From Podarcis tiliguerta (lineage: Eukaryota), in assembly GCA_965153285.1 (NCBI GenBank), contig OZ229110.1: a stretch of DNA of 64,000 nt; one strand, written 5' to 3'. Within the stretch, counting starts at the first letter, position 1, and each line of letters opens with the position of its first letter. The notes under the pieces were generated by a model. That model saw only the letters and a list, made by a program, of their open reading frames with translations, was not told the origin of the DNA and made no database searches. The translations under genes were made by a program, and so were the position numbers. Below are positions 22,009 to 47,709 of this stretch, piece after piece.

Positions 22009-22134
22009 ATGATGGTACTTTTACCTCAAAAGAGCCTTTTGCGGGGAAGGATGAAGATGCAACTGATGTTCCAAATACACATGATGGCCACCATGAAGGA
22101 GGACATTCTAAAGACCAGCAGCCCCAAAGTCCTA
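22009..22134 (+). CDS. CD44: CD44 stem exon S1
   Basis: tacacag|...|gtaagt, 126 nt, phase 1-1, open. DGTFTSKEPFAGKDEDATDVPNTHDGHHEGGHSKDQQPQSP. Confidence 0.88.
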
Positions 22135-22988
22135 GTAAGTGTAACAATTGTATTGGGTACATTTTATGTAAACTTTCTTGTGCTTCTGGAAGAGACAAGA
22201 ATGGAAGTCTGATGTGTGGTAGAAATAAGACTGAATAAGGATTAGTTTGCACAATCTTTATGTTGTGTAGTTGTGTACATTGTTGCAGTGGTGAGCTCAC
22301 GATCAGTGTTGCTCTTTGTCCCTAGTGTGACATGTCTGATTGGTCCAGAGGCATGATATGTCTCCCTCAAAAAGGGAGGACTGATCTCATGGTTAGTGTA
22401 TGTATGCTGATCACAAATTTATTCTACTTGTAGTGGTGGACTGTACATGGGCCTGATACCCACTCCATGAAGCAGTGCTATGTAGAATGTACAAGTTTGC
22501 CAAATCTAGCCTCTACAGGTCTGTGTTTAAAGTTGTGATTAATTAAACTATTGCATTAATATCTCCAGTGTGCTATTGTGTCAGATGTCCAAGAGTTCTG
22601 GAAATATGCAATTAGTCTCTTCAGAAAGCTGTCTTCCATTTGTGAAAGGCATTTTTCCTTTTGATACATACTGCATGAGTATGTGGTTTTCAGTTAATTG
22701 AGGCCATACTGGATATCCAACCTCGATAGCGCATTGAAAAGGTGACAGAATGGTGCTTGAGGATCCCTTTTTTCTCAGTTGGACAGTATAGAAAAACTCA
22801 AAAATATTCATTGAAAATCTAAAGGGTAGTTCTCTGGCTATTTGTTTGAATTAGAAGAAGTCTAGATTCATCTGGTCATCTCTCAGGGATGGAGAGAAGC
22901 CTCAGTTTGAGATTCTGTGATCCAGGTTTTCCTGGTAGGAGTTAAAAATGTTGCTTTCATCTTGGAGTTCTTTGTATGCACTTAATTT

Positions 22989-23001
22989 TGTGTCTCATTA
23001 A

Positions 23002-23040
<39 letters not shown>

Positions 23041-23054
23041 TGAGAGAGAGAGAG
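22989..23054. repeat. (TG)n(GA)n microsatellite
   Basis: Directly visible. Confidence 0.95.
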
Positions 23055-25513: not shown

Positions 25514-25618
25514 ATTTAGACTCACATGAGAAGCAAGAAGATCCAACAGAAGAATACAAAACACCTGGACTCGAAGGGGATAAGTATGGCAGAAAAACTC
25601 AGCTTTCTCCTAGTATCA
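25514..25618 (+). CDS. CD44: CD44 stem exon S2
   Basis: catcatgacag|...|gtaagc, 105 nt, phase 1-1. LDSHEKQEDPTEEYKTPGLEGDKYGRKTQLSPSI. Confidence 0.8.
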
Positions 25619-28600
25619 GTAAGCATAATTCTTTTTACTGGGAAAATGGCCTTGTAGATATTTTCTGAAGCTTACTCATACTTGCTTATTCTCCCAACAT
25701 ACACTCAGCCTTCACATCTTTAATTTGCACTCACATTGGTCATACCATTTAGTGTGTTATTCTGCCTTCTTTTCTCTCTGTTGGTGCCCCTTTATACATT
25801 TTCCTTATTTTGGATTATGGCCAAGCTGAGGACTATTTGCCTGTGTTGTATAAACAAACAAACAAAATCAACATTAAAGCCATTCAAGAACACAGGACGT
25901 GATCCTTCATTCTCCATTAAGAGGAAGTCCTGGTGATGGTGACAGAAGACAGATTAATGGAGTTAATCTGCCACAGCATATATCCAACCTGTTAGTTACT
26001 CTGCCATCATTACAGCTGGTGAAGTGTCAAACAATGAGAAGCGCCCTGAAAACTCTACTCAAGTTCGACAGCTTCCTGAAGAATTCCCTTCATGGTGGCA
26101 GTCGGAGGAACACAAAGAAGTGCGCAACGCAACTTCCAGGAAGGGTAACGCCTTACAAATGTTCTAGTCGGTTTGCCACCCCCCGCTCTTAAAAATGCTT
26201 GGGCAAGAAACTCATCTTCTCAATGAGAAGTTGCTGCTAGTCTTTTGTCTGCTGTGACTGAAACCAGCATTGCAGCCGCCTCCAGCACAGTGACTGTTGT
26301 GCTTGAGCACTGGCAATATGAGCGGATGCAGTCATGTGGCGGCCAGTGGCATGTAGAACAGTGCACAAGTTGACCGCAGGTCCTCTTTTCTCCAACCACT
26401 TGTACCATCGTGCGGAAGCACAAATCAGCATACTGTACTGCCAGTGGAAGTGCACAGCAATTACTATGCTGGAAGTGGTCATGTGGATTGACCTAGCAGG
26501 TTCATTGTTGTTACTTGGTTGTAGCACAGTGCAGCAATTCCTTTTGGCCAAGAAGGTATTAAATGCCTCAGCTTCGCATATGTGCCTGTGAAAAAGGTAC
26601 GCGCATACTAAGCACACACATGCATCTTTCCTTGCAATGTGCAATATGGGAGGCCTTCTGCAGCACTGTGCTCAATTCAAATATTTCTAAATAATATGGA
26701 TCATTTTGAAATTGTTTTAGATATATGCAATAATGGATAAAAGTTAGTTGTGAAATTAAGAATTAGGGTAAAATCTTTGCTGTGTAAACTAGCTTAATCA
26801 GGTATCTTCCCCATGTAGCTGGAGAAGAGGAACTAGTTCCATAGTCTTGCATTGTACTCTCTTCCATTTGCTTTGTCATTATTTTTGATAATTATAATTT
26901 AGTCATGGCTTTCTCCTTTGCACTTCTCCTCTTTTAGGCACCAATTAAAACTTCATAGCTATATTTTTCTGAGAACTGTCACAAAAGCCCGTTGACATGA
27001 AATCATTATCTTGTCAAAACATTCACCGCTGTAATTGCCATTCATATTCTGAATCCAGAAAGTCATTGTTTTGGCTTTCTTCATTACTCTTAACAATTTT
27101 ATTACACTGTGATACCTTAGCCTGGTATTATACTGAATTCTGGTATAACCTAGATGATTTTCACATTCACTGCATTTGCACATAATGATAACCAATGGTT
27201 TAGACGCACAAACCACGCACAAAGCGAAGGAAGCTTCTGTGAGTCTTGGGCATGCTTGTTTTCTACTCTCTTTCCATGTGGCAGGGAGAAGGCTTCTGGA
27301 GCATTTAGTTCCAGTTTCAAAGAATCTTAACTGATAACATATGAACCAGAGATTGGTGTAAACCAAACTCTGGTCAGTTTCTGAACAATCCAACTTCAAA
27401 CCTTGAGTCATGACCCAGGCTTGTTTAAATAACCACAGCTTCTCTTAAACCACTGTCCCTGGTTCCTACATAATGGCAAGCCAGGTTTCTCAGAAAATGA
27501 AAATAAATATTCTCCCTGTGATCAGGAAGGGGCAGAAGGAATGCACAAGCGCAAGTCTCATGGCAGCTCTTTCTTGCTCATGAATGTAGCACTAAACCAT
27601 AGTCCAGCGTTATTAGACAGTTCTGGCGTTACCATGGACCAGAAAACAGTCATTATAACTGATCTTTCTGTAGCCTATAACAAACACACAAAGCCTTGTA
27701 TTTACTTCTCCCTATTTAAGGATTCTTGACCACATCAGCTTGACATTTCTCTTTAAACCAAATCAAAGTTTCAAACAGGAATAAAAAAAATAGCAGCTTA
27801 CTGTGGCCAATTAGCAATGGGAAACGAGAGAGGCAGAAAATGGGCAAATGACTTTATGAGATCCAGTTCTCTTAGTGATCTTTTGAGGACAGTTTTGTGA
27901 GCGGTGCTTCTTGGCCTGACACTTTGTCCTATTTTTCTCTTATGCAAGGTTTAAAAAGAGGAAACTCTAAAATCATAAAAAATAATATAGTCAATAACGG
28001 GCAACCCTTTGCATACATACGTACAGAAAGGAATCCTCGTTCTTACTCTTCCCTGAGCTCATGGAAGGGCTTTTGATCCAGTGGTTGAGAGGAGGAAACA
28101 TTTGCTGATCTCTTCCACAGTGCCCCTGAAAAACAGCTCCAGAAACTTGGGGGTACCTTCCAAAACACAGTATAAGCTATTGTGGGGATGGATTGCAGGA
28201 CGAAGGGTGAATTGGGAAAAATCTTTTGCCCTCCATGTCCATTAGCAGAGGCACCTGCTGAATCAAAAGCCTTCTGTTATCATAAGTGCCCTGATTGGAT
28301 TCCACCCATTGTAAGCACAAAAATACATACGGTAAAACTTTGGTGGGTGGGTGTGAGTAAGGGCTTTGGGATTCACTAAAATGGCTTGTAGATGCACCAC
28401 AATTTAAATAAAGGGATTCAATACCCTCACTTAATTCCCCCCCCCCACTTTATTTTGCTTCCTTATTGGTTAGTATTATATTTGGCTTTATTTTATCAAT
28501 GTCCTGCTCTAAGCTAACTTCTCTCTAGTGTATAAATAAACTCTTCTGATTTTGATAAATACTACAAGGTTTTCAATTCCTGTGAGAAGTCAATGCAAGA

Positions 28601-28800
28601 ACTATAGGAACAGACCCCTCTTTCTTGAATTAAGCACCAAACGCCTAACTGTTAAGCCTCTTTCTCCCTTCCTCTTATTAATCTTATTGTTGGCAGGCAA
28701 GTTGTTTATTCAGGAAGGTGTTGATGGATAGTAGCTTAGCTGGGAAATGTTGGCTTAACAAATAAAAATATCATAACTCATTCCTCTGTTGTCTGAACAG

Positions 28801-28887
28801 CTGTCAGCCCTCATCACAACTCACATGAGAAAATGTCCACCAGTATTGATTTTAAGGAGGTGCATCATCCCACTGAAGGAACTTGGG
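28801..28887 (+). CDS. CD44: CD44 stem exon S3 (candidate)
   Basis: tctgaacag|...|gtaaaa, 87 nt, phase 1-1. VSPHHNSHEKMSTSIDFKEVHHPTEGTW; shares ACTCACATGAGAA with S2. Confidence 0.65.
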
Positions 28888-29803
28888 GTAAAAAAATTAA
28901 CTGCTAACAATCGTTTATAATGGTCTAGAATACAAACTTAGTGGTAACATCAGAAGTAGTGTGTTGATTGTAGAAAACAGCCCCTAATCCTGTAAGGATT
29001 TTTCTATTCAATAAAGCCCCACTTAGTCAGAAATCTTTGGATCTGAATATACAGTTCAGACTGAATATGCATGAATATTCATTTGGACTGAATATGTATC
29101 CTCTATTACTACATCTATGTATTGCTGAGATCCCCTGCTCTTTTAATAACTCCTCAAAGCATCCTAATATTGGGTTGCTTTGTCAATAACTTTATTTCTT
29201 CTTATCCATTGGTTGTTCTTAATGCCAGCTCCATTATTTGTGGTGGCAGTGGGATGCATAAACTGAAAATTCTCTTGTGCTGTCTCTAATCTCTGTGTAA
29301 CTGTCTCTTTTCTTATGGTAGCAAATTATACAGTAAGAATATAGCATTTCCACTGAGATTCTGATCAAATCACCCGTATTCAGAGCTCCAACTTTTCTCT
29401 AGTGGGATCCAAAGGATCTTGCAGTGCCTCCCAGGAGCATATCCTGGTGTATTGAGTGCCTTGTAAATGCTCTCTCTTCTCTTTATTATATCACTCACAA
29501 TGCCTTGTGTGGTGTTACAGTGATACAAGGCAACTGTAACCAACTCAACCGTTTTCTTGTCATGCACTGGATCATAGACACTCTTATTGATTTGATGCCC
29601 ACTGTACATTGTTGCACCGCCACCACTGGTTGGTTTATTTCCACCCAATAAATCTATTACGCATTATTAATCTCTTACTCATTATTCATCTCTAACGAGC
29701 TCTGAAAACACTACCACAAATAAGAAAGATACTTACTTTGGTGATTGGGAAATGGATAATGATATTAAAAGCTTATCGTAGGTTTACATAATCAAATCAC
29801 TAG

Positions 29804-29989
29804 ATAAGAGTTCTGAAGAACATCATGATGTTGTTGGTGATGATGATGATGATGATGGTGGCGATGATGATGATGATGGTGGCGATGATGATGATGATCA
29901 TTATGGAGAAGGGTCTGGGCACTTAAATCCTGAAACCGTTCTTGAATGGAACAGCAGTGGTGATAACGAACCTCGGCCATCAAAAACCA
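29804..29989 (+). CDS. CD44: CD44 stem exon S4 (poly-Asp, EGSG; v3-like GAG exon)
   Basis: cactag|...|gtaagc, 186 nt, phase 1-1. KSSEEHHDVVG-D6-GG-D5-GG-D5-HYGEGSGHLNPETVLEWNSSGDNEPRPSKT. Confidence 0.82.
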
Positions 29990-32272: not shown

Positions 32273-32446
32273 CTGTGGTCTCCACCGAAGATGTCAAGCA
32301 TGATGACTCGGCCCATGATTCATTTCTGTATGGTGTGCACTCTGAAAAAGACAGTGAAGTCAGATATTCAACAAATGGCACAAGGGAGGATGTGCCACCC
32401 CGAATTGTTCCTCTAGGTGATGATGAACATTATTCAACAGCTACTG
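32273..32446 (+). CDS. CD44: CD44 stem repeat exon S5
   Basis: cacaacag|...|gtatga, 174 nt. VVSTEDVKHDDSAHDSFLYGVHSEKDSEVRYSTNGTREDVPPRIVPLGDDEHYSTAT. Confidence 0.85.
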
Positions 32447-34151
32447 GTATGACTACTAAAGAAAGCATGATCTTGACACTACCTCTTTCATGTCAGCATC
32501 AACTCTCACTAGTATCAAAGTCTAGAAGTTAGTTAATAACTAGAATCATGGTGCAGTGCTACATCTGTAGTATATCTGCTACTACATCTGCAGATAATAT
32601 GCTGTGATTACTTAAAAAAAAGAAAGCAGAGCCACACATTTGAAGGCATTTCCCCCCAGATGTGTTCTGTTAAATCTTAACAAAGCCATGAAACCCAAAG
32701 CTCACGTGTTATTTGGCTTTGGCTAAGCAAGAGTGAGTCACAAATCCCAAATCTGAATTTATTTTAGACTCCAAAGTTCCCTGAAATTTGCAGAAGTTCC
32801 AAACCAACATGTCATCCCTGTCTAACCATATCTTAAAGCAGTATTTTTTAAAGTGCTGTCATATGTAACCACGTTGGCCTCAATTCAGTGCTACACAAAG
32901 GGAGTTTGGCAGTGCTAAAGTACACATAGATCAGACACGCAGCCAGTAAAAGTCGGTATAGAAACATGATGAGATTGGCCCATACCAAATCAAGTGGCCG
33001 CTGTGTTTTTCAAGTAGCCAGCGCTTGTAGACTTCACAAAAATGGCTCAGATCAGTTCCTTGTTTAGAAAGTTGGGAGCCAACATGAGCTCATTTTGTGA
33101 TGCTTCACTTTGTTTTAAAGAAAGAACTATATAAACTGCTATTCAAACACATGAAAACAGAGATCTTTTGAACCCAAGGGCATAGATTTGCCAACATTAG
33201 AGGAAGATTGCATTATTAGGGAATGAAAGATGAATAAATGGCATTTATACAAACACATACGCAACTTGCATTGCAATTTTGGTTTGGTTTATTATGGAAA
33301 TGTATTAGCATTTTCTCTTGCAGATGGGGTCTACCTTGCTTTCCTATTCCAAAGGGCTTTCTGTGGGCTTGGTGTTATTTCTCAAAATCTAAAGCATGTT
33401 CTCTTGGGCTCATCTCAGGCAGTCATCACAATGTTCAACACATTATGCTTCCTGCTGAATGCTGGGAAAAGGGTTGACTCTGAAGGAAAAATCTGGTGGT
33501 GTGGTGGTGGTACCTCAAGACGCTTCTGGCAGTTTCCTTGGATTTAAACAGCAGCACCTTTAGAACTGTATAAGGCTATGCTGAAATGGTTGAACTACAT
33601 CTGGCTCAGAATGCCAGCCAAAATATTTTTTTTCCAAGTTGATTGTGTGAACCGACATTATCTATCTGCAGCATTTGGCCTTAGTGCCTGGAACAAATGT
33701 CTAAACATATTCCAAAAAGTACAATTTCAAAGAAAAAGGAAGAAGAAAAAGAAGACAAGAAAGAGAAAGTTTATGGACTTAAGATGGTGCTGTGATTTCA
33801 GTTGTACAAAGCCTTGGCATCTATCAAAGACGTTTGATAGATCAGTTAAAGGTGCAGGCTGTTGCCACATTTTTTCTGCCTATAATACTGTTACACGCCT
33901 TTCCGCTATTCCTACTGGTCTCTGGGGCACTGTCTGGAAAATCAGCAACTTCTGATAATCGAGGTGATGACACTGGGTGGCTGTGAATTCAACAATACTT
34001 TCCCAAAAAATTATCTACTTTCCTCCTCCTCTTGCTTATGCACATAATTGAAAAAGCAAGCCATATCTAGTTTAACAAGATAAAGTGAACAATCTGGATG
34101 GTTGTTCAGCAAGCATAACACTGCAACTGATTCAAAACATCATCATAACAG

Positions 34152-34340
34152 CTGGGTCCTCCAGTGATGATTTCTTCAAGCAGGAAGACTCAACTCAGAA
34201 TCCACTAGATGGCGCTCTCTCTGGATTAGAAACTGAAGACACATTACCTACAACCACAGCTTCAGACGTATTGCATCCTGTGCTTGTTCCATCAAGTGAA
34301 AGAGAAAGAACTCCAGAGGAAGAATCTTCCCACCATACAG
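34152..34340 (+). CDS. CD44: CD44 stem repeat exon S6
   Basis: cataacag|...|gtatca, 189 nt. GSSSDDFFKQEDSTQNPLDGALSGLETEDTLPTTTASDVLHPVLVPSSERERTPEEESSHHT. Confidence 0.85.
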
Positions 34341-35569
34341 GTATCAGAACCAATAGTGAACTGTAGAATTAGATTTTCATTTGGATTGTTTGCTTTCATT
34401 TCCTGATCCAGGTTTCTGGAGAAATGGTGTTTAACCATACTTAAAAATAGAACTTTTAGTCACGGGGCGGGGGGGGGGGCGTTGTGAGTTTCCTTTATTC
34501 TTCCATATATTAGAGATGTGAGTTCCAAATTGTTGAGAGTTTTGCTTTTCGCAGCCATTCCCCCCCCCCCATAATTTTTAGTTACATTTTAAATAGATAG
34601 GTACAATCTATTATCAGTGTCAAACATACCCCAGATATGTCATACCGATAAAATTTATGTTTATACCATTTGCTAGTAAACCTATATAAATATCTAAAAG
34701 TAGACCGTACTGGACTTGATGGGCCAGTGGGCTGACCGAATATTAAGGATGTGCCGTGTGTGAGAACACAGAGGTATAAATCAAGACCACTTTGCTGTCT
34801 GGTTATTCTGAAGTTATCTGTGTTTTATCCCTGTTGTGGCAATGCAGCAGCTTGAGTTGTATTGGTTGCCAGACATTGCCACAGTATGCAAATTGAAGAA
34901 TCTGGGTTTAAGCTGATGTAAGCCTACTGAACTCAGTGGAAGTAGCTGATTCTGTAAGAAGACTGAATTTTCATCCAAGCATTTTGGCCAAATTGGTTTG
35001 TGCATTAGTCATTCTATCCATTTCCACATAGAAAGAAAAATTATATAAAATGATAAAATTATGCCTCTTCTTGCACCAACTAGTGATTAGCATGCCAACT
35101 CAAACATAGGGAGCTGCCTTATACTGACCACTGGTCCATCTAGCTCAAGATGGACAGTCTGCACTGACTAGCAGCAGCTCTGCCAGGTTTCAGACAGACT
35201 CTTTCCCAGTCCTATGTGGAGATGCTAGAGCTAGAGATTGCATGCAAAGCAGATTCTCTGCCACTGAGTCAAGCTTCTACCCCATGTAAGGTTTGAACTA
35301 TACTGATTCAAATAACCACCTCAGTACAGTGACACTTTGTTGAGGTGAGAGTTCTGACAGGCAGAATGGGCTTCCGTATTGATTTCTGTTGAGGTGGCGA
35401 CTCTACATGCATAAATAAGGTTTCCATCCTATGGTGAAACAATTGGGGAAGCCTGTTTCCATTGAGGTTCACGCACAGAACTTTCTGAGTCTCTCACTAT
35501 CTACTAAACACACGGAAATCCAAAATACTGAGTTACTGATTCCTGCATTGTTTATCATTGCTACAATAG

Positions 35570-35743
35570 TTCTAGCCTTCAATGAAAGTGCTGAACATGA
35601 AGAATCACCTCAAGATCAGTTATCCGCAGTGGGCAAAGCTGGGCGGAGTAGTGGTTCTGCCACAAACAGAACGATCCTTGGTGTCCTAGAAACACTTATT
35701 CCTCAAAGTGAGAAGCTTCATGACAATGAATCTTCTCAGACAG
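35570..35743 (+). CDS. CD44: CD44 stem repeat exon S7
   Basis: acaatag|...|gtactg, 174 nt, with an in-frame alternative AG ending 35575. LAFNESAEHEESPQDQLSAVGKAGRSSGSATNRTILGVLETLIPQSEKLHDNESSQT. Confidence 0.8.
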
Positions 35744-35937
35744 GTACTGCCTGCAGGATGTTAATGTAACCTTCCTATGTTCAGTTCTGTTTCTCTTTTA
35801 TGTCAGCGAATAGGAAGGCTTTTATGTCTCAGCGAGAAGTCCAGCCTTTATTAGAACTGTGGTCTGACGCTTCTCCATTTGGGGTGAAACATGGTCTTCA
35901 GAAACGGAAGCAATTTGTATTGTGGTAATTGCACAGG

Positions 35938-36301
35938 GGGACGCGGGTGGCGCTGTGGGTGAAAGCCTCAGCGCCTAGGGCTTGCTGATCGAAAGGTTGG
36001 CGGTTCGAATCCCCGTGGCGGGGTGCGCTCCCGCTGTTCGGTCCCAGCGCCTGCCAACCTAGCAGTTCGAAAGCACCCCCGGGTGCAAGTAGATAAATAG
36101 GGACCGCTTACTAGCGGGAAGGTAAACGGCGTTTCCGTGTGTGGCTCTGGCTCGCCAGAGCAGCGATGTCACGCTGCACACGTGACCCGGAAGTGTCCTC
36201 GGACAGCGCTGGCCCCCGGCCTCTTTGAGTGAGATGGGCGCACAACCCTAGAGTCTGTCAAGACTGGCCCGTACGGGCAGGGGTACCTTTACCTTTACCT
36301 T
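35938..36301 (+). mobile_element. Sauria SINE (different subfamily), full length
   Basis: GGGACGCGGGTGGCGCTGTGG head, B-box GGTTCGAATCC, (ACCTTT)n tail, 12-bp TSD TAATTGCACAGG (35926-35937, 36302-36313). Confidence 0.92.
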
Positions 36302-37509
36302 TAATTGCACAGGAGGAAAGCAGCAGCCCCTCCTATGTCACGGTTCTGATCCAGTTCCCCTGCCCCTTACATGGCAGCTACATTCACAGAGCTGCATCTC
36401 ACATATATTTTGGCCTTCTTACTACCCTTTAAAGTGAATTCCTAGTATTCCAGTATTAGGGCACTAAGATAATCATGGCATTCTGACAAAACCTTCCATT
36501 AATAATGGGTTGTTAGCATTCCCAATAATGGATGGCATTACCGCCAGGCCATGGAGGCCTAGCCACCAAACGGCGCCATCCCTTCTGCAGGATCCTACGC
36601 ACATTTCTCTGTCCTGCTACCTCAGTCAGTGTTAAAGAATGGTGGACCCATGTTCTTTTGCATCAGAGGCACCTAAGCTTTTTAAAAAGGTAGCTTTGAG
36701 AAGAGCCACTATTCCATTCAAACAGATAAGTCACATTTCAGCATCTGAGTAGGGCTTCATATCATATTAGTTTTATTTCATCTTGACACCACCACCCCAA
36801 TATAATTCAATCTCTGACACCAAGAATATTAGTGTCAGAGTGCTTTACACACAATTATTTTGCTTGCGCCTCTGTTGTGTAGATGCAGCCCATTACTGTT
36901 GTTTTAGCATTTCTTCAAGTAGAAAATACTCCACATTTACTGTAGATAACCAAAATTATCTACAGTATTTACTAATTTGTATTTCTATTGCCTGCTTTGC
37001 TGTCACAACATTGAAAGAACAAATTTGTTTTTACAAATACTTGGTAATTGTGCCATAAACAGCATGTGTCTATGAGGAAGTCAAAATACCTCCTTTGCAA
37101 GCTTATTTCTTTTCTTTTTTTAGAAACCTAGCTGTCTGCAAATAAGAAATGAACAAAATATGTTGTCTTCATACCATTTAACTAAAACCAAAATCATTTT
37201 ATAGCTGTGGAATACAAAATGCTTGCTTCACATGTACATAATAATGGCTAGATAAGATATTGTTTCAAAGGATTTAACTAAAATGAATTAACTGAAATAT
37301 GAACTGGTTATTTTTTTATTGAAAAATGCTTATACTAAAAGTGTAATAGAGAATCTTGACTTAGTGACAGATAAACAGACCCCTAAAAGGCACCCTTTTT
37401 TCTTGCGTGCCACCAGTGTAGTTGGATTCATATTGAACTGCAAGATGCATGTAGAATAGACAGTGGTTCTGCATATATTAAATTAACAAATACTTCACCA
37501 CAAAAGCAG

Positions 37510-37677
37510 ATAATGGGATGAAAGTTGAAGAATCCACTCAAGGCCCACCATCTCATGGCATATATCCTGAATGGTCCAATGAAGAAAGATACCCCACAAA
37601 CTCATCCAGCAAAGAGACACTACCTGAAATTATTCATCCAAGTGAAAATGAGCAAAAAAATGAATCCATTTATACAG
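37510..37677 (+). CDS. CD44: CD44 stem repeat exon S8
   Basis: aaagcag|...|gtatat, 168 nt. NGMKVEESTQGPPSHGIYPEWSNEERYPTNSSSKETLPEIIHPSENEQKNESIYT. Confidence 0.85.
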
Positions 37678-37863
37678 GTATATCTCAGAAAAGTTCTATT
37701 CAGCCCCAATCATTATTATTTCCTACGAAGGGTGTAATCCTGAAGTCAGCATGAATCAGGATTGCAGCCTTAACTATTGATAAATCCTAAGAAAATTATT
37801 TACTCTACATAACATGGGCCTGATAGTGAAAATGTGGTATTGATTCAGTCATCATTGTAGCAG

Positions 37864-38047
37864 TTGTGGTCTCCACGGGTAAGATTAACCGTGAAGACTG
37901 ATAATCATGGTATATAGATTAATGAGATCCATCTTGGTGGGAGCAATGAAAATTGATATCCTACAAAAACATCTAAAAATGGAATTATGCCTGGTCTCAT
38001 TTCAAGTGTAAACAAGCATGAAGAGGATTTGGAAATCTCTCATACTA
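37864..38047 (+). pseudogene. CD44: Decayed CD44 repeat exon psi1 (possible 15-nt microexon 37864-37878)
   Basis: Family acceptor gattcagtcatcattgtagcag. VVSTGKINRED* then, after a frameshift, EIHLGGSNEN*YPTKTSKNGIMPGLISSVNKHEEDLEISHT. Original donor lost (CATACTAGGAAG). Confidence 0.8.
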
Positions 38048-38719
38048 GGAAGAAAAAGAAAATTCGGCATTGTTAAACTTTTCTACACTTTTTAAATTCA
38101 TTTAATAAATGTATAGTCACCTTTCAAAACAACAACGACAAAACTTCCACAAGATGACTGACAAATATGTAAACTCAAGATCAAACAATAAATTTAAAAA
38201 CAATTTAGAAAACCCCAAATCCACAAGAAAATAGTAGCAAGCTTGCATAGCACATCAGTAAATTTCTAAGCAAAACAGAAATGTTTTTGAAGTCTTCTTG
38301 GGTTGAAGTCCTCTTAAAGATGAAGCCATGCATACTTCTTTGGGAAAAGAATTTGAGAAATGTGGCATGTTAGATTGGAGGTTATTGTTTCCCCAGATGG
38401 AATTTATTACTTTGTCAATGCATATGGAGTTCAGTCTTAACCTAATAATTAATACTGCTTAAGCCTTAACCTAATATTTTAATTGACTTCACCTAAAATT
38501 CTGATAGTGACCGTAAAGCTAGATAAGATGGGCATCAAATAATTATGAGGAGGAAACTGCTAACATAGGGTATTGTCTAACTAAATCAAGAGCTGATCCA
38601 CGGAAATGAATGGATTCATGTTATTCCAGTCCACTGATTTTAATGGGTCTATTCTTTATCAGGCTACCATTCGCTACCATTTGTTGTCTTTAAAACAGAT
38701 TCAGACATTATTATAGCAG

Positions 38720-38810
38720 CTGTTGGAATGAACTACAAAGATTCCTCTCATGATTCACACATGTAGGCTAGTTTATATCCTCTTGGGCAGTGAAGGCAAA
38801 TTTATTGCAG
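38720..38810 (+). pseudogene. CD44: Decayed CD44 repeat exon psi2 (5' part)
   Basis: Family acceptor gattcagacattattatagcag; VGMNYKDSSHDSHM* followed by degenerate TATCCT..TGGGCAGTGAAG (YP..W.SE motif). Confidence 0.6.
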
Positions 38811-39019
38811 CTAGAGAAAAAAACCATGAAAAGGTTTTTTTAAAAACCCACCTATTCTTGCCTTTTCTTCTTTTAGACTGGGTTACTTTAGTCTTCCATT
38901 GAGGTTGATGACCAAAGGCCTATGTTGACTTGATCTGGACAAGTATTTATAAATACTCCAGAGTCCGGCAAAATGAGTCCTATGGCAGAAAGATTTGCTT
39001 TCCCAGACAAGAGGCTTCA

Positions 39020-39164
39020 AAAGATTCATGAAGCAGAGATGGTTGTATATGATCTTGGCTGGGACAGTGACAATAAATACCTTGCAAATGCATCTAAATT
39101 TAATTAGCCACCTAGAATCATTCCTCAGAATAAAAAGTGAGTAAAAAGGAAATGCCACATACAG
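39020..39164 (+). pseudogene. CD44: Decayed CD44 repeat exon psi3 (3' part)
   Basis: LGWDSDNKYLANASKFN*PPRIIPQ, then a frameshift to KEMPHT, with the family donor CATACAG|GTAC; no family acceptor found. Confidence 0.7.
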
Positions 39165-39210
39165 GTACAGGCAGTGATTCATTATCATTAAATATTTTAG
39201 CTAAATTAGA

Positions 39211-39261
<51 letters not shown>

Positions 39262-39570
39262 CACCCCATCTGGTTGTGTTTCCCCAGCCACACTGGGCGG
39301 CTTCAAGCAAAAGATTAAAAATACATTAAAACCGTCCCTAAACAGGGCTGCCTTCTGATGCCTTCTAAACGTCAGATAGTTGTTTATTCTTTGACATATG
39401 GTGGGAGAGCGTTCCACAGGGAGGGCGCCACTACTGAGAAGGCCCTCTGCCTGGTTCCCTGTAACTTTGCTTCTCGCAGTGAGGGAACCGGCAGAAGGCC
39501 CTCGACGCTGGACCTCAGTGTCCGGGCAGAATGATGGGGGTGGAGACACTCATTCAGGTATACTGGCCCT
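39211..39570 (-). mobile_element. L2 LINE 3' end with (AAT)n tail
   Basis: Minus ORF GPVYLNECLHPHHSARTLRSS...RAFSVVAPSLWNALP is the canonical L2 ORF2 C-terminus. Confidence 0.88.
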
Positions 39571-39754
39571 GTTTTCTGTGTAGATTTTATAGCCATAGAA
39601 TACGTTTTGGATAGAGCTATAGTTCTGTCTCATCTAAAACGGCTATTGTGGTTACTGATTTCCACTTTCCATGTTAGGGTTAAGTAGAATTGCACTTAGT
39701 GAAGCGCATGTGAAATCAGAGAATTCAAAACTGACCCCGCCATCTTTGTAACAG

Positions 39755-39934
39755 CAGTAGTCTCCAGTGATAGCACTGACTATGAAGATTCCGGTCGGGA
39801 TACAATGTTGCACAGTGAGCATTCTGGACAGGATAATGAAGAAAAACATCTCACAAACACATCTGGAAATCATTTGCTGCCTGGAATTCTTCATGCAGCT
39901 GAAAGTGAGCATGAAAATGAACATTCAGACACAG
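39755..39934 (+). CDS. CD44: CD44 stem repeat exon S9
   Basis: taacag|cagtag...|gtattg, 180 nt. VVSSDSTDYEDSGRDTMLHSEHSGQDNEEKHLTNTSGNHLLPGILHAAESEHENEHSDT. Confidence 0.85.
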
Positions 39935-40414
39935 GTATTGACTGGAAAAATAGTAAAATCATTTTACTTCTTTTTTCAGTAATCTCTCTAGATAAATTAG
40001 AAGCTATCTCAAACTATGTAAAGATGTAATCCTGACTCCATTTAAATAAATGGACTTTCACTAAACACAGGAAGCATGGTGTGATGAAAAAGTATGCACA
40101 ATTTGTTTGCTGCTTGAGATTATCTCCTGCCTGAAATAACTCTTCCAAGTTGAAGCAGTCTTGAAATGGAAACATCTCCTTGGGTGTCTTCCAAGTACAG
40201 GAATTCTAATGGCTTTTAATTCTTCTGGTGTTCGATGAAAGGTACTTGAACTGTAAATCATAGTAGGTAAATGCCATCAGACTAAACGTAATTATACTTA
40301 AAAACCTGATACGATATTGATTCAATTCAACAAAACTTAGCACTTAGTAAGAACTGATGAAAAGAACGATACCTATGTAACATTTGAAAAATATTCAAAC
40401 CATCATTACAACAG

Positions 40415-40588
40415 CTGTTGCCTCCAGTGATAATGGCAAGCAGGAAGACACCACACAAAAACCACATGCAATGCATCCTGGGTGGGAAAGTGAAGATGAA
40501 GATACCACAAACACAACTATGGATAATATCCCACCTATAATTATTCTTTCAAGTGAAGGAAAGCATGAAAAGGAGACACATCATACAG
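40415..40588 (+). CDS. CD44: CD44 stem repeat exon S10
   Basis: tacaacag|...|gtacct, 174 nt. VASSDNGKQEDTTQKPHAMHPGWESEDEDTTNTTMDNIPPIIILSSEGKHEKETHHT. Confidence 0.85.
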
Positions 40589-41220
40589 GTACCTCCCAGG
40601 AAATAGAACTTTAATAAGTTTGCAGTTTTTTGTATTATTTTTCAAATGTACTGCATTGTCACCCTACTCCATTTGAAGAGCTATCCCAGCTACTCTCATT
40701 CTCTCTGCCAGTTGATAATAAAGTTCCATTCATTTGCAACAAAATAATGGTATTCATAACCCACTTAAAAGCAGGGTCAGTAATTACAGGAGATGACTCT
40801 CCATACTTAGCCTTCAAACCCAGGTGTGTGTTTTTTTATGAGTCACTGTTAGAAGGTGGGTGTATAAATGCAGAAAGTACAGAAATAAATTGCCATAACT
40901 GTGACTTTCAGGGATGACAGTGACCACTGACTTAGCATCAGTCAGATGAATGGAGTAATTTAGTGGTGGAGTAGTAAGGACAGGTAAAATACAAATAAAT
41001 CTAGGGCTGAAGGGCTACTTGGCATTACGCCTCCAAGTTACAAAAACAAAACAAAACTGTACTTGAATAGTCTTGTAGAGATACAATTTTTTTTGTGTTA
41101 AACCAATCTGTTTCATTGAAATCTTTTTAAGGAAATTCTGCCATCAACATGCCCTTTAGGGATGCTGATGGGCTAACATATGTATTATTTAGAAAGAGTC
41201 AGAAGCCTCCCAATACATAA

Positions 41221-41460
41221 CCATAGAATTATAGAGTTGGAGGGGACCCCCAGAAGCCATCTGGTCCAAGCCCCTGCAATGCAGGAATCTCAACAAAAGT
41301 TTCCACAACAGTTGACCATCTAATCTCTGCTTAAAAACCTCCAGTGAAGGAGAGTCCCTCATCTACTAAGGGAGTCCGTTCCACTGTTAGGCTACTCCTA
41401 TTGTCAGAAGGTTCTTCCTAATGTTTAGCTGGAATCTCCTTTCTTGTAACTTGAATCTAT
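41221..41460 (-). mobile_element. CR1-type LINE 3' fragment
   Basis: CATAGAATTATAGAGTTGGAGGGGACC...CATCTGGTCCAAGCCC is the reverse complement of the CR1 3' end with an (ATTCTATG)-like tail. Confidence 0.7.
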
Positions 41461-41563
41461 GTGCAGTAGAAGGCCAGGTAATGTGCCTCTCAGTAAACAA
41501 TTTCGTAATAGATTACATAAGCATTGTAATAAATGAATGAATGATCTAACTATATTGTGACAG

Positions 41564-41728
41564 CTGTGGTCTCTGATGGTGGTAGTGACCATGAAGATTC
41601 TACTCAAGAAGCACATCCTGGCCAGAACAATGAACACAGGCATCCTTCAAACACGTCAACAGATTATTTTGTACCTGGAATTATTTCTTCAGTTGAATAC
41701 GTGCATGGAAATGAAACTTCACATATAG
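41564..41728 (+). CDS. CD44: CD44 stem repeat exon S11
   Basis: gtgacag|...|gtacaa, 165 nt. VVSDGGSDHEDSTQEAHPGQNNEHRHPSNTSTDYFVPGIISSVEYVHGNETSHI. Confidence 0.85.
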   Translation: MWSLMVVVTMKILLKKHILARTMNTGILQTRQQIILYLELFLQLNTCMEMKLHI

Positions 41729-41842
41729 GTACAAGCAAGAAGAAGAAAATTCAGATATTCTCTTTGTTACGTTCTAGATGAATTAGGCTGCTGTATTGAG
41801 CTAGATAACAGGTTGCAATTTTAATCTTACTGAAATCAATTA

Positions 41843-42043
41843 CAGTGGTACCTTGGGTTACGAACTTAATTCGTTCCAGAGGTCTGTTCTTAACCTGAAA
41901 CCTTTCTTAACCTGAGGTACCACCTTAGCTAATGGAGCCTGCTGCACTGCTTGTGCGCAATTTCTGTTCTCATCCTGGGGCAAATTTCTTAACCCGAGGT
42001 ACTACTTCCGGGTTAGCGGAGTCTGTAACCCGAAGTACCACTG
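41843..42043. mobile_element. pogo/Tigger-like MITE (same family as 1020-1261)
   Basis: TIRs CAGTGGTACCTTGGGTTAC / GTAACCCGAAGTACCACTG with flanking TA. Confidence 0.88.
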
Positions 42044-42197
42044 TATAGAAATTCATTGACATTAAACAAAACAAGGAAGATGCTCGTGTCATGATAGGGC
42101 ACAATGGTCTGTAATTGACATGAGAACTGGCCATGCAATCATAATATTTAAACTTGATTCCAGCATCATTGGAATAGCAGTGGTCTATAGTTAAGGT

Positions 42198-42550
42198 GGG
42201 ACGCGGGTGGCACTGTGGGTTAAACCACAGAGCCTAGGGCTTGCCGATCAGAAGGTTGGTAGTTTGAATCCCCGCGATGGGGTGAGCTCCCGTTGCTCGG
42301 TCCCTGCTCCTGCCAACCTAGCATTTCGAAAGCACATCAAAGTGCATGTAGATAAATTGGTACCACTCCGGCGGGAAGGTAAATGGCGTTTCCGTGCGCT
42401 GCTCTGGTTCGCCAGAAGTGGCTTAGTCATGCTGGCCACATGACCCGGATGTTGTACGCCGGCTTCCTCGGTCGATAAAGTGATATGAGCGCCGCAACCC
42501 CAGAGTCGGCCACAACTAGACCTAATGGTCAGGGGTCCCTTTACCTTTAC
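42198..42550 (+). mobile_element. Sauria SINE, full length
   Basis: Near-identical to 16340-16682; (ACCTTT)n tail; TSD CTATAGTTA(A/T)GGT at 42185 and 42551. Confidence 0.92.
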
Positions 42551-42975
42551 CTATAGTTATGGTATAAGCCTTGAACATCCATTTTTCATTCATGCACACA
42601 GTAAAGCTTTTAAGTAACAATAAAATACACTGCAAATATCTAGAGATAACTTGCTATTTAGTAGTATTCCTCTATCAGAAAGTTAGAATAAAAAGAAAAC
42701 ATTCCATGTAACTATAAAGAGGAAGTGTGCATTTTTGTTTTGTTTTTGTTTTTTCATTCTGTTGATATATTCCAAATGAATTATATTCCTTTTGTGTCCT
42801 GGTTTGTAAGGAAACTAAATTTGCATTGAGATCCACTAAAATGTGGTAATGGATATCCATTAGCAATACTAATTTTAAAAAATTAAATGCGATGCTAAGC
42901 AAATCATGTGGGATGTAGTTCTGCAAATGTTACAGAACACTTAACATTAACCCAACCCAACCATCATTATCATAG

Positions 42976-43155
42976 CTGTGGGTTCCAGTGATGATATCAA
43001 ACATGAAGTTGCTACTCGTGATCCAACGGTACATGATATACATCATGAATCGGGTAGAGAAGATGATTATTCTACAAACAGCACGAAGGATGAAGTACCC
43101 ATCGAAGTTATTCCTCCAGCTGGAAACAATAACATAGATAATTTCTATCATACAG
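42976..43155 (+). CDS. CD44: CD44 stem repeat exon S12
   Basis: tatcatag|...|gtagtt, 180 nt. VGSSDDIKHEVATRDPTVHDIHHESGREDDYSTNSTKDEVPIEVIPPAGNNNIDNFYHT. Confidence 0.85.
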
Positions 43156-43415
43156 GTAGTTGTGGCAGATCCATTCTTAATTATGTGGTGATTGGTGATG
43201 GTGTGGGGAATCACATTGCTCACAACTGGATTCTTATTTTCAGTCAGTAAATATAGTTGAACATGTAAGGTGCACAAGAAATGTAATTGCATGTAAATAT
43301 GAGTAAAGCTGAGAACATTGCGCAGTGAGTTATTGGGAGGGGAGTGACTTGCGAAAGCCATCATTTTGTATTTTAACTCGTCCAAACCTAAGTTCATCAT
43401 TGATTCACCAAACAG

Positions 43416-43568
43416 CTGTCATACACAACGATCATGAAGACTCAACTCAACAACCATTACCTCCCATTCATCAGCCAGGCTGGGATTCTGAAGAAATATA
43501 TCCCACAAATACTTCTAGAGATGGTATACCGATGGGAGTTGATTCAGATAGTGAAAGCAAACAAACAG
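43416..43568 (+). CDS. CD44: CD44 stem repeat exon S13
   Basis: ccaaacag|...|gtattg, 153 nt. VIHNDHEDSTQQPLPPIHQPGWDSEEIYPTNTSRDGIPMGVDSDSESKQT. Confidence 0.85.
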
Positions 43569-44903
43569 GTATTGCGCTGAGTAATCTATTCATTTCATCA
43601 CAATGTATGAAATGAAGCACTGTTTTTGAAACAAAGCATTTGTCGTTCTTTAAATCTGTACCCCGCCTTTCCAGCAAATGGAAATGTTGATTAATGTCTA
43701 GATTTTAAGGTTGGAATTCTAACCTAAGAATATTATTTGTTCCTTTTAACATAAGGTTGCTGTTTTTGGGCAATTTGAGAGGGACTGATTCTTTGGGATC
43801 GATGTCTCATGCTCTAGGAAATCCTCTGATTTTAACTTTTGAATGTTAGCTCTAGCCTCTGAGAGTTGAAAGTGCCCTATGGGGATATTTTTAAGCAATG
43901 ATACATGACAAGGACAAGTGATTTGTTCAAAATAGGGATTAGGGCATAAATTGTACTGAGGCATAGCCTTCTGAAAATTAGAATTAAAAGTTCTCTCACT
44001 AGAGGCAAGCTTGCTATTCCTTAATAATAATAAGGAACAACTCCTGTTCTAGGAGTTGATTTTATGCAAACCCCATTTAAAGGAGATGTTCCTCCCATCA
44101 AGTTTATATAGCAGGCTCCAGAAAAAACAGGCCTGGCAATATAGACAATAGCATTCATTCCACGACACAAGAACTTGATAGTACCTGACAGATATTTCTA
44201 TGCTGATGTTTTGTTTTGTTTTGTTCTCAAGCTAGTCTGTAGGGCATAATGTCCTTTGGTTTAAATTTCTGATCATGTAGAACATAAACTGAGCTTGTAG
44301 AACATAAACAAACAAGATATACAAATATGGTTCTGAAACTAAGTCTTACATTTTAATTATTTATATCTCATTCATTATGATTATTATTTGCATATGCCAA
44401 TCACCCAGCGTCAAATAATGATGTTTGCTGTGATGATCATTTAATTATGACATGATTTATAATAAAATTAGCCCAAGTTAAAACCTGTAGAAGAGTTGAA
44501 ATGAGTGTGTGAGAAAGGGCGTGGTGAGTAGAGAGCAGAAGGTTGAAGAACGTGGGCTCTCATCCACAACTGACAAGTACTTGGCTGTAGCTCATGAATA
44601 GTTTTCTCTTCCATCAAAAGTATATAACACAAATTGTCAAGTTGATGAAATTTTCTGCATGCCTAATCAACTGTCAGTGTCAGCTGGTGATGTCAGATGT
44701 TGGATCGGAAAATAAAACCAAGGGGGAAGCCAGATCACTGTCAAAGTCTTTTGGAATTTCTGAATTGTAGCAAATCTGGCATCCCAGCATGTTGTTTGGA
44801 TAGAAATATTCTGCTGGTAGAGTAAGAAGTCAGTGGATCAGAGTGAAAAGCAGCTAATAGTTTTGCTATTTTTACAATCTCAATTCATTTACCATTGCCA
44901 TAG

Positions 44904-45050
44904 ATGTGGCCAAAGAAGATTCAACCCCAGAACCAGTGAGGCAATGGGGTCATGAAGACAAATACACGACGAAATCAACAGCAGATGTCTTAGTTCCTGG
45001 AATTGTTCCTCGAAGAGGAATAAGTCAAAAAAATAATACTGATCATACAG
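44904..45050 (+). CDS. CD44: CD44 stem repeat exon S14
   Basis: tgccatag|...|gtattc, 147 nt. VAKEDSTPEPVRQWGHEDKYTTKSTADVLVPGIVPRRGISQKNNTDHT. Confidence 0.83.
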
Positions 45051-46522
45051 GTATTCTGTAGAATGGTGGTGGGATTCCTTTTAACCCTGTCTATCTTAGG
45101 TGAGATAATCTCATGTTGTTAATTTTCATGTCTATTTTAAAACAGACACCGAAAATTAAATTGCATGTAACCTGAACTTATATAAGGTTGAGGAACAGAA
45201 ACTAAATTGTTACCTTGGCCAGGACCTTATTGGTAAAACGAATGTGTTGAAGTTGCTACTTGGGGACTGTACCATGTGGAGATCACCTCATAAAATAATG
45301 TCATAAAATCATTTGTAAGCAGTTGCAGCCTAATGACATTTCCATATCTTTGAACTTCAGTTTTGAAATTTCCCTGTCAAAATTCCTTGCTTAATATTCT
45401 TTAATTGTGGCTAAGGGAACACATGTGATTGTGATAACCATGACCATTTTGATAGCCATCAAGATTGTGAGAAGTACTTGTCTGTTTGCCAGGCACTGCA
45501 GGTTTACACAACGTAAATTTGTTGAAGGAGTATTGCATTTTGAGTTGTGATCAAATTGACTGTTTCCCAAACATATGTTATTTTTTTTGCGGGGGGGGGG
45601 GGGCGGGAGAGTATGATATGTACAGGGGAATAATTTTCTAAAACAATTTAGGTCATGATTTCTCTATTCCGTTCTCCAAATATTTGCATTTATTGTTTCA
45701 ATTATGTCATTTTGCTATCATGTGAAGCTAATGATCCTTCACAAAATGTATCTATTATGCTGTCTGCTGTTACATCTCCTACTTGAGAGCCTAGTGATGT
45801 CTTTAAATACTGTCTTTATGTCAGTATTAATGCCAAGATGTAAGGTTTTGCAGGATCCTTGCTTAAACATGGCAGTGTGTTGAAGTTTTTGGTGTACTTT
45901 AGAGACTCGTTTCCTTCCTAGTTTCAGTGGCTAGTGTTTCTTTTTAGGTAGACAATTAGAGATCTCTTAATATCTGTAGTAAGAGCTGATATATTGATTA
46001 TTCATTTCACTTTGTTGTTCCTGGCATATTCTTGGGCTTTCCAAACTGCTGGTGTGCTTTACATTTCTTTAATATTTATCTCTGTAGAGATAAAAATCGG
46101 ACTGAATTTGAGCCAGTGGGTTTGTTTAAGTTTTGAAAAAGGGAAGGAAATGACAACCCCTTACTTCCCAAGCGTGGTGCGGGTTAATGGGCTTGTTAGC
46201 AGGAGCCATGCATGAATTTTATTATTAGACAATATTTCCATGTGTACGCACACTCTAATGTGGCATCTTTTGCCAAATGGTCCTTGGATCCAATGTTACT
46301 TTGATCTGAGCTGCTTCTGGCTGTTGATCACTTGAGTCTCTGTCCATTACTACTGGAAGGTTTCATGAGCAGATCAGAAACATTGCAACCTTCCCTATTT
46401 TGTTCTTTTTAAACTTTCAGTATAGAAGGAATTTTGTAAAACAAAAAAACAAAGCGGTTTTAATTCTGCAAAGTTCAATGTTAATTGATAGTTAATAGTT
46501 AATTCAACCATCATTACAACAG

Positions 46523-46708
46523 CAGTAGTCTCAAAGGATGGAACCAAAACTGAAGAATCAACACAAGATCCACAGTTACATGGATTGCGTCCTGAATGGA
46601 GCACTGAAGATGAGCCTCTTGTAAATGGCACTCAAGATTATGTATTACCTGGAGTTTTTCCTGAAATTGACAGTGGTTCTGACAGACATCCATCATCGCC
46701 TACTGCCA
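46523..46708 (+). CDS. CD44: CD44 stem repeat exon S15
   Basis: tacaacag|cagtag...|gtaaga, 186 nt. VVSKDGTKTEESTQDPQLHGLRPEWSTEDEPLVNGTQDYVLPGVFPEIDSGSDRHPSSPTA. Confidence 0.87.
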
Positions 46709-47610
46709 GTAAGAGTTATAAATTCCAGGACCTTCAGCTAACCTTTACTTTTCCATACATCAAAATCCTGGGGAAATGTGGTGTGGAAACAAATAGATTT
46801 TAGATGGAAATCCCACTGTGATTACATTCTGTTCATTTCATGGCTTCTTGCAAAGATGCATGATCAAACTCTGATTTTAATGAATGCGTTTGCACTAGTC
46901 GAAGGAAGGTGTGTGATCGTTTCTCAACAATCTTTCTGTCTCTCCAGTTTTGGAGATTAGTTGATTTTTCTCCCTTTTCTCACTTATGGGAACTATTTTC
47001 AAATTAGTAACAGATTAATACATATTTCTATAAGTATCACTACAAACAATTACACATAGCAATATTAGCTAACGTCTGCGGTGTTTGCATGAATTTGATA
47101 AGTATATGTGGTGTTATGGAAAGGCAGTTTCACCCTGATTGCTACAGGGATACTCTTCACAGAAGAACTCAAAATACAGGGCTAAAGAATGCAATAAATA
47201 TAAACCAGCTGGAAATTTAAAAGAAGAAAGCATTTTATCATGGTTTGGAAAACTGATTTTAATTTTCATAGAGTAATGGATCCCCCTTTTCCCTTTCCTT
47301 AGCATAGCCTGCCAGTATTTTACAAGAGAAGGCTTTTTGAAATGGTTGGCAAATAAGGTGTGATAGGGAGAAACCCAAATGAAAGCTCTGAGGAAACGAT
47401 GGTTTATATGGAGCTTAAGCACTGCTGTATCCTTGTACTTTACCATTCCCGTGTCAAGGAATAGGGCCTTGTTATGAAACTCAACGCACCTGTGTTTCCT
47501 TTGACAATATCATGTATTTTTTTTGTCTGTGAAAACTCAAGGGCTCCAGATTTATATAACACAGCTCTAATGTTTTGTGAGTAATGCATGTTTGTTTGTT
47601 TTTTATCTAG

Positions 47611-47709
47611 GTGATAACCCAAATGACCCGAAGGGGTCCGGAAGAGGGACACACATTGACCAGACAGGGGAATCGCCAAAAAGTGAGCCACGAATGGCTA
47701 TCATACCAG
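47611..47709 (+). CDS. CD44: CD44 membrane-proximal constant exon
   Basis: Strong U-rich acceptor tttgttttttatctag|, donor |gttggt, 99 nt. DNPNDPKGSGRGTHIDQTGESPKSEPRMAIIP, comparable to human ...PIRTPQIP. Confidence 0.9.

Follow-up and report, generated by a model that had tools for sequence, protein, structure and literature searches.

An ancient array of symmetric variable exons in CD44 of the lizard Podarcis tiliguerta, spliced for R5–R10 and predicted to encode a modular disordered stalk

The CD44 gene of the lizard Podarcis tiliguerta carries, between its constant exon 5 and its membrane-proximal exon, a cassette of 16 variable exons, 11 of which (R1–R11) are paralogous copies of a unit of about 58 codons. 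We analysed a 64,000-nucleotide stretch of contig OZ229110.1 (assembly GCA_965153285.1), called the window below, in which most of the gene lies on the plus strand, exon 1 falling outside. Overall, we think it probable that the cassette is an ancient array of symmetric exons, spliced into RNA for R5–R10, which would encode a modular disordered stalk whose function we infer. The exons themselves are not new, as they are already contained in automated RefSeq models.

Layout and origin of the repeat-exon cassette

Cassette exons were sought as all open AG...GT segments in phase 1-1, and two public P. raffonei CD44 models were mapped onto the window. An earlier sequence-only reading of this DNA had counted 15 open exons totalling 2394 nucleotides (nt), a figure that the exon scan and the P. 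raffonei models correct to 16 exons and 2526 nt (842 codons). Its claim that every exon is symmetric and a multiple of three, so that any subset splices in frame, was borne out: AG/GT borders, a length divisible by 3 and phase 1-1 were found for 16/16 exons, and joining the exons in any of the 153 ordered pairs possible from exon 5 through the membrane-proximal exon yields no stop at the junction codon, so that any subset of exons is arithmetically in frame. The same reading had put the protein at up to ~1130 amino acids (aa), and a public model of nearly that size exists in P. raffonei isoform X2 (1173 aa), which uses all 16 cassette exons; isoform X13 (1059 aa) lacks R7 and R8.

The repeat exons, each 147–189 nt long, extend from position 32273 to 46708, with the same borders as in the earlier reading, which had already described them as 11 paralogues of one unit. 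When a DNA profile was built from any 10 copies and run over the 64-kb window (nhmmer), it recovered the 11th with expect values (E) of 1e-15 to 1e-38, always on the plus strand. Mutual identity of the paralogues is 22–32%, and the consensus motifs proposed for the unit (EDSTQ, PGW, TN[TS]S, PGIIP and HHT) can all be seen in the alignment. Similarity also reaches about 25 nt into the upstream intron, with a mean pairwise identity of 0.53 at positions -12 to -3, 0.39 at -25 to -13 and 0.26 further out, and it includes the first six bases of the donor. The exons are therefore paralogous neighbours with a shared splice-site context, as expected of a tandem exon-duplication array, and R1–R11 evidently arose by tandem duplication of one exon. 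Tandem Repeats Finder found no unit-scale DNA repeat in the window because divergent introns separate the copies. The unit profile further located at least four decayed copies among the R exons, carrying stop codons, which the earlier reading had missed.

All R acceptors have a G-poor, A/C-rich context with the consensus CAACCATCATTACAACAG in place of a polypyrimidine tract. Over the 25 nt upstream, the composition is A 38%, T 30%, C 26% and G 7%, and pyrimidine content is 0.47–0.63 at repeat-exon acceptors as against 0.74–0.84 at exon 5, the membrane-proximal exon and the transmembrane (TM) exon. This context precedes R1–R11, the upstream variable exons Vb and Vc, and the dead copies (for example at 40390–40414 and 46498–46522); that of Vc, CATCATTACAG, is as in the repeat family. 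The preservation of the motif in paralogues whose age exceeds 200 million years argues for a functional splicing signal that co-regulates the exons, and such A/C-rich acceptors would be weak 3' splice sites through which exon inclusion could be regulated. The acceptor context also holds YCAY-like repeats.

Splicing of the repeat exons and the stalk they would encode

RNA reads were examined over positions 39700–45100 only, the interval of R5–R10, in two stranded RNA-sequencing (RNA-seq) runs (X23 and X24) from one study carrying the same species label. GT..AG joints were found exactly at the predicted borders (39934>40415, 40588>41564, 41728>42976, 43155>43416 and 43568>44904), with 28–83 reads per R5–R10 joint. 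All exonic reads were in one strand orientation, and depth was 18–75 over exons compared with 0–9 over non-repeat intron bins. R5–R10 are transcribed and spliced consecutively into mRNA, with occasional skipping. The sequence-only reading had staked its case on spliced reads being found, and their complete absence is excluded for R5–R10 by these exact joints; the remaining ten exons rest on the public models.

Beside the inclusion of R5–R10, alternative use is suggested at R7, where five reads in one run (about 9%) and none in the other join R6 to R8; at R11, where one assembled contig (run X1) passes from R10 to the membrane-proximal exon (45050 to 47611), so that the last unit appears to be optional too; and among the isoform models, which differ from each other. 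R5 has a NAGNAG tandem acceptor (cag/cag, 39755/39758), at which isoforms X13 and X2 of P. raffonei differ by exactly one Ala.

Might the R exons be used as one block, in or out together, yielding a long and a short form and not many spacers? Both RNA runs agree with such use, given that their joints lie nearly all between neighbours, at similar depth, with the five R7-skipping reads as the only departure. It is contradicted by predicted models that differ by single units (X13 without R7 and R8, a Zootoca model without R8), by the contig without R11 and by RefSeq entries that reach 49 predicted isoforms in a turtle (Chrysemys X1–X49), these being predictions, not molecule counts. We consider block use unlikely, if still a contender, and prefer a cassette whose units can be included separately.

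The RNA donors are not identical to the animal behind the window. Most reads are 95–99% identical to it, and exonic differences occur in all reads at 39923, 40578, 41610, 43044, 43103 and 43487, with a further one at 40544 in the run X1 contig only; together, these suggest that the donors belong to a different population or a close relative.

Translated, the cassette (826 residues) contains no Cys, 21% Asp plus Glu, 21% Ser plus Thr, 7% His and about 7% Pro, with an isoelectric point of 4.5. It has 17 N-x-S/T sequons, one of them at a conserved position in most units. Pfam gave no match in the repeat units, and the unit profile had no match in the PDB even at E 10. A folded domain was rejected because AlphaFold2, run on the unit alignment, returned no secondary structure, with a predicted local distance difference test (pLDDT) score of 61 and a predicted template modelling (pTM) score of 0.15. 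A mucin-like proline-threonine-serine (PTS) tandem-repeat domain, in which these three residues predominate and a single large exon is usual, was likewise rejected, on the Ser/Thr, Pro and Asp/Glu contents and the arrangement of one unit per exon; in its working, the insert is better likened to a glycosylated stalk than to a PTS mucin domain.

We propose the following course of events. An ancestral exon would have been duplicated in tandem to give R1–R11 before the squamate radiation; the insert is predicted to form a disordered, acidic, His/Ser/Thr-rich, N-glycosylated stalk separating the Link domain from the membrane; and exon inclusion would lengthen this stalk by up to about 840 residues, adding negative charge and glycans. 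A combinatorial spacer that sets reach and glycan load is plausible on the basis of composition and disorder prediction.

The units could alternatively be short linear modules for binding or processing (of a co-receptor, growth factor or metal ion, or for glycosaminoglycan attachment), with copy number setting valency, not reach. It speaks for such modules that the five unit motifs, the TN[TS]S sequon among them, are kept in pre-squamate paralogues and also in turtles, that the insert is rich in His and has several acidic Ser-Gly sites, and that R10 (identity 100% in Zootoca, 93% in Rhineura and 80% in Python) approaches the conservation of the Link domain. However, R3 and R8 drift quickly across squamates, the unit is predicted to be disordered and has neither a known domain nor a solved relative, and N-glycan sequons together with splice-enhancer needs could also account for the motif conservation. 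Binding modules thus seem to us doubtful, and the spacer remains our preferred reading of the insert.

Age of the array across sauropsids

A profile of the 11 units, searched against 1.84 billion representative proteins, gave 51 hits. The named ones are all sauropsid (Podarcis, Salvator, Gekko, Vipera, two turtles, Alligator, emu, ostrich, Falco, Anser, Pseudopodoces and Neopelma) and nearly all are CD44; the hit from Neopelma, a bird, is labelled 'uncharacterized protein'. At a library-wide E <= 0.001, the profile hit nothing named as mammalian. Full-length CD44 hits contain 4–11 matched stretches and named fragments 2–4. Among the matches listed in a homologue search, long CD44 isoforms (900–1265 aa) occur throughout squamates and turtles. 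Counted in CD44 models from 23 species, the units number 8–12 in squamates, 8–10 in turtles, 11 in the alligator, 8–10 in ratites and 3–4 in other birds.

Against the units of 13 squamates, R1–R11 gave reciprocal best hits in collinear order. We also built a maximum-likelihood tree (97 units, 59 columns), in which every one of R1–R11 belongs to a clade made up of squamate units alone, one from each species; the gecko is usually among them, and the clades range from geckos to snakes. Support by the Shimodaira–Hasegawa-like approximate likelihood-ratio test (SH-aLRT) is 98–99 for the clades of R2, R3, R4, R5, R10 and R11 and 85–93 for the others. Unit identity across squamates is 40–93%, compared with 53–67% for exon 5 and 38–47% for the membrane-proximal exon, which puts the conservation of the units on a par with these two exons or above it. 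These one-to-one clades and collinear best hits indicate that the 11-unit array predates crown Squamata and was, by all appearances, complete before living squamates diverged.

The sequence-only reading had held that this lineage amplified one exon. The duplication part of that claim stands; the attribution to a lineage does not, given the one-to-one squamate clades and the collinearity over 13 species. An array specific to this lizard's lineage, and absent as such from other reptiles, would fit the 11 clear tandem paralogues in the window, and recent block amplification of the unit is real in emu, ostrich, Malaclemys and alligator. Yet squamate orthologues are 40–93% identical and collinear, closer than the window's paralogues are to one another, and every R unit groups with one unit per squamate, gecko included. 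We rejected lineage-specific amplification on the reciprocal best hits and the unit tree, and regard it as highly improbable.

Outside squamates the history differs. Emu and ostrich each have a two-unit block repeated at least four times, with 100% protein identity within a species and differences between the two, and in Malaclemys a four-unit block occurs twice, also with 100% protein identity (residues 322–901 of emu model P0008, 208–706 of ostrich model P0009 and 525–1013 of Malaclemys model P0126). Such identity within species points to very recent amplification or concerted evolution. The earlier reading had foreseen one way for its lineage claim to fail, namely one-to-one orthologues of all 11 copies in birds and turtles, and this did not come true; turtles, alligator and ratites have their own block amplifications of the unit, and orthology to the squamate R units is not one-to-one. 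An approximately unbiased (AU) test disfavours a single clade for all squamate units (p 0.031). The last unit provides the only grouping across lizards, turtle, alligator and birds (R11 with All_11, Tur_10 and the last bird units, at a support of 82–86 that is not decisive), and R11 is a possible orthologue of the terminal units in the other three groups. The unit family thus appears to be ancestral to sauropsids, with an ancient and stable set in squamates and amplification that seems to be ongoing in other lineages.

Loss appears to have accompanied this stability. Other squamates keep an extra unit between the orthologues of R4 and R5 (Rhineura unit 4, Pogona unit 5 and Varanus unit 5), of which the window holds no live copy. 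The dead copy psiA occupies the R4–R5 position and partially matches Rhineura unit 4, Varanus unit 5 and Hemicordylus unit 7; it is likely a decayed form of this unit's orthologue, and lacertids appear to have lost at least one unit besides R1–R11 since the squamates diverged. Within psiA, a conserved acceptor is followed 15 nt on by a strong donor (GTAAGA), which would delimit an in-frame 15-nt microexon (37864–37878); this possible microexon is absent from the two mapped P. raffonei models.

That the open frames are chance open reading frames (ORFs) or repeat-derived and lie outside the mature CD44 message, as the lack of a Pfam family and the weak non-pyrimidine acceptors might suggest, can be dismissed as practically impossible in view of the exact spliced joints in stranded RNA-seq, the conservation across Sauropsida and the nearby dead copies, which show what decay looks like.

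Several points weigh against an ancient, expressed array encoding a modular stalk. The RNA covers 6/16 cassette exons in two runs of one study, and reads within the examined interval cannot give the share of CD44 transcripts without the whole cassette. Consecutive inclusion dominates, and combinatorial use is weakly shown. Of the seven exonic differences between the window and the RNA donors, 5/7 change the amino acid, a ratio (5:2) on counts too few to test, so that recent constraint may be weak. The deep nodes of the 59-column unit tree are poorly resolved, the exon-per-unit structure in other species is read from protein models only, and the function of the stalk is wholly inferred.

Gene context and comparison with known systems

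The gene was identified as CD44 on several grounds. Two exons together encode a single N-terminal hyaluronan-binding Link domain (Pfam Xlink, PF00193), the exons for the single-pass TM segment and the cytoplasmic tail match annotated Podarcis CD44 at 100% identity, and all 120 homologues among the matches listed are CD44 or unnamed, all of them squamate or turtle. Compared with models of P. raffonei and P. muralis, the exon peptides of the window show 93–100% identity, with an exact match to neither. Coordinates are collected in Table 1. Around psiD, interspersed repeats occupy 41842–42552, where RNA and contig depth is very high on either strand; an ORF related to the short interspersed element (SINE)-like copy at 42198–42552 also occurs at 16264–16485.

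Table 1. CD44 exons, dead repeat copies and a neighbouring element in the window (LOO, leave-one-out nhmmer)
Feature	Position	Strand	Evidence and remarks
CD44 exon 2, Link domain first half	11952–12117	+	Pfam Xlink 1–47, E 2.7e-11; 100% identical to Podarcis CD44 models
CD44 exon 3, Link domain second half	17983–18119	+	Pfam Xlink 54–92; P. raffonei model P0001 residues 78–129
CD44 exon 4	19362–19433	+	P0001 residues 124–147, 100% match; strong polypyrimidine acceptor
CD44 exon 5, final constant exon ahead of the cassette	21286–21456	+	P. raffonei models P0001/P0061; AG/GT, 171 nt
Va, 126 nt, phase 1-1	22009–22134	+	P. raffonei models; unit profile score above all 200 shuffles; nhmmer E 0.01; hhalign P 1.3e-3
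Vb, 105 nt, phase 1-1	25514–25618	+	P. raffonei models; 4/200 shuffles reach unit-profile score; hhalign P 8.6e-3
Vc, 129 nt, short Trp-rich unit	26016–26144	+	P. raffonei models; 0/200 shuffles; hhalign probability 82%, P 1.1e-5
Vd, 87 nt, short unit	28801–28887	+	P. raffonei models; aligned as a family with units of Rhineura, Hemicordylus and turtles; hhalign 86%, P 4.6e-6
Ve, 186 nt, poly-Asp (GAT microsatellite) then acidic Ser-Gly site	29804–29989	+	P. raffonei models
R1, 174 nt	32273–32446	+	LOO E 5e-30; squamate orthologue clade
R2, 189 nt	34152–34340	+	LOO E 2e-22; orthologue clade SH-aLRT 98
R3, 174 nt	35570–35743	+	LOO E 1e-15; orthologue clade SH-aLRT 99
R4, 171 nt	37507–37677	+	LOO E 9e-24; orthologue clade SH-aLRT 99
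psiA, dead copy, stops in every frame and frame breaks	37842–38029	+	nhmmer E 1.6e-18
psiB, dead copy, 5' part of unit with stop	38699–38808	+	nhmmer E 1.6e-6; translation
psiC, dead copy, 3' part of unit with stops	39026–39171	+	nhmmer E 1.6e-11; translation
R5, 180 nt, NAGNAG acceptor	39755–39934	+	LOO E 2e-38; RNA joint 39934>40415, 56 and 57 reads
R6, 174 nt	40415–40588	+	LOO E 1e-38; RNA joints both sides
R7, 165 nt, sometimes skipped	41564–41728	+	LOO E 6e-28; RNA joints 40588>41564, 41728>42976; absent in X13
psiD, dead copy, acceptor end only	42156–42197	+	nhmmer E 0.003; weak 3' remnant 42625–42706, E 0.096
SINE-like interspersed repeat cutting psiD	42198–42552		Very high RNA/contig depth, both strands; loose read ends 42197/42198, 42549–42554
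R8, 180 nt	42976–43155	+	LOO E 5e-30; RNA joints both sides
R9, 153 nt	43416–43568	+	LOO E 6e-16; RNA joints 43155>43416, 43568>44904
R10, 147 nt, most conserved unit	44904–45050	+	LOO E 2e-15; RNA joint
R11, 186 nt, last unit, divergent 3' end	46523–46708	+	LOO E 5e-28; SH-aLRT 99 squamate clade; skipped in one contig
Membrane-proximal exon, 99 nt, phase 1-1	47611–47709	+	P. raffonei model; contig from R10 to this exon; unrelated to R unit
Transmembrane exon	48919–48997	+	100% identical across squamates
Cytoplasmic-tail exon including stop codon	50332–50539	+	Mapped from P. raffonei model

The five variable exons upstream of R1 (Va–Ve) were compared with the unit by profile scores against shuffles and by profile-profile alignment (hhalign) of the orthologue family of each short exon with the R-unit family. 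The short-unit family of Vc and Vd aligns collinearly with the N-terminal half of the long R unit (probability 82–86%, P 1e-5 to 5e-6), and turtles have at least four copies of the short Trp-rich unit upstream of their long units. Vc and Vd thus appear to be older relatives of the R unit, belonging to a shorter Trp-rich family; Va is possibly a distant member, and the relation of Vb is marginal. Neither the profile scores nor hhalign related Ve, the membrane-proximal exon or exon 5 to the unit family, and the 'PHHT' ending that exon 5 has in common with the units lacks significance. In lacertids, Vd lacks the central Trp part kept in Rhineura, Hemicordylus and turtles, an apparent in-frame internal deletion. 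In Ve, a GAT/GGT coding microsatellite (29825–29898) encodes poly-Asp with Gly breaks, whose length and pattern in P. raffonei are not those of the window, and is followed by an acidic Ser-Gly stretch (GEGSG) resembling a glycosaminoglycan attachment site, which suggests by analogy that Ve may be a functional analogue of mammalian v3.

The closest known system is the set of variable exons v1–v10 of mammalian CD44 (exon layout from Screaton et al. 1992, via PMC3581078). It belongs to the same gene and the same site, between constant exon 5 and the stem and TM exons, and likewise consists of exons with lengths that are multiples of 3; these are alternatively included, as some of the lizard exons appear to be, and encode an unstructured glycosylated extracellular insert, as predicted for the lizard. 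It differs in having 10 exons, compared with 16 in the lizard, of which 11 are unmistakable paralogues of the ~58-codon unit. Public sauropsid CD44 models (P. raffonei XP_053243970.1, X2; Chrysemys X1–X49; Alligator X13; emu X14) contain the same exons or their orthologues, as automated, unannotated predictions. Our search of the literature available to us found no paper on a CD44 repeat-exon family, its age or spread, the origin of variable exons by duplication, or reptile or bird variable exons.

By eye, and as a lead only, the human v6 peptide EETATQKEQW... (PMC9965047) resembles the short Trp-rich unit HEETSTQ..WW..HKEQ..TT. We tentatively propose, as a possibility that falls somewhat short of probable, that all amniote CD44 variable exons, the mammalian v exons included, derive from one exon of ~40 codons (HEETSTQ..W..W..HKE..TT), of which sauropsids would have evolved a 58-codon derivative that reached a dozen copies before the squamate radiation and continues to be amplified anew in ratites, turtles and crocodilians. 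In one report, the acquisition of nine or more Esrp-dependent exons by Cd44 is placed within mammals (PMC5703972), and in another v3 is called a mammal-only trait (PMC2531186). The expressed sauropsid cassette implies that a large CD44 variable region is not confined to mammals, and the sauropsid data challenge both reports on the mammalian novelty of the variable exons and of v3. If the single ~40-codon ancestor is correct, the cassette would have arisen by exon duplication as an ancient feature of amniotes and would not be the mammalian novelty of those accounts (PMC5703972; for v3, PMC2531186).

Few alternative exons have received as much study in cancer and immunology as the CD44 variant exons, yet the origin of the latter is obscure. 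The reptile gene has a larger expressed variable region, in which an origin from one unit is still visible and the units seem to have been kept one-to-one over the whole of squamate history. The origin of the cassette thereby gains a testable model, tandem exon duplication followed by divergence. The array also offers a natural stalk-length series for probing the role of the variable region, for which the re-amplified ratite and turtle arrays are ready comparisons.

Two other proteins provide parallels for such an arrangement. In the PEVK region of titin, duplicated symmetric exons of the same phase are differentially included and set the length of an unstructured segment. That segment is an intracellular elastic spring, whereas the CD44 cassette would form an extracellular, acidic, glycosylated receptor stalk. 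In CD45 (PTPRC), the alternative exons A, B and C set the ectodomain size, charge and glycan load of a leukocyte receptor; these are three non-repeated N-terminal exons, whereas CD44 here has an array of paralogues in the membrane-proximal stalk.

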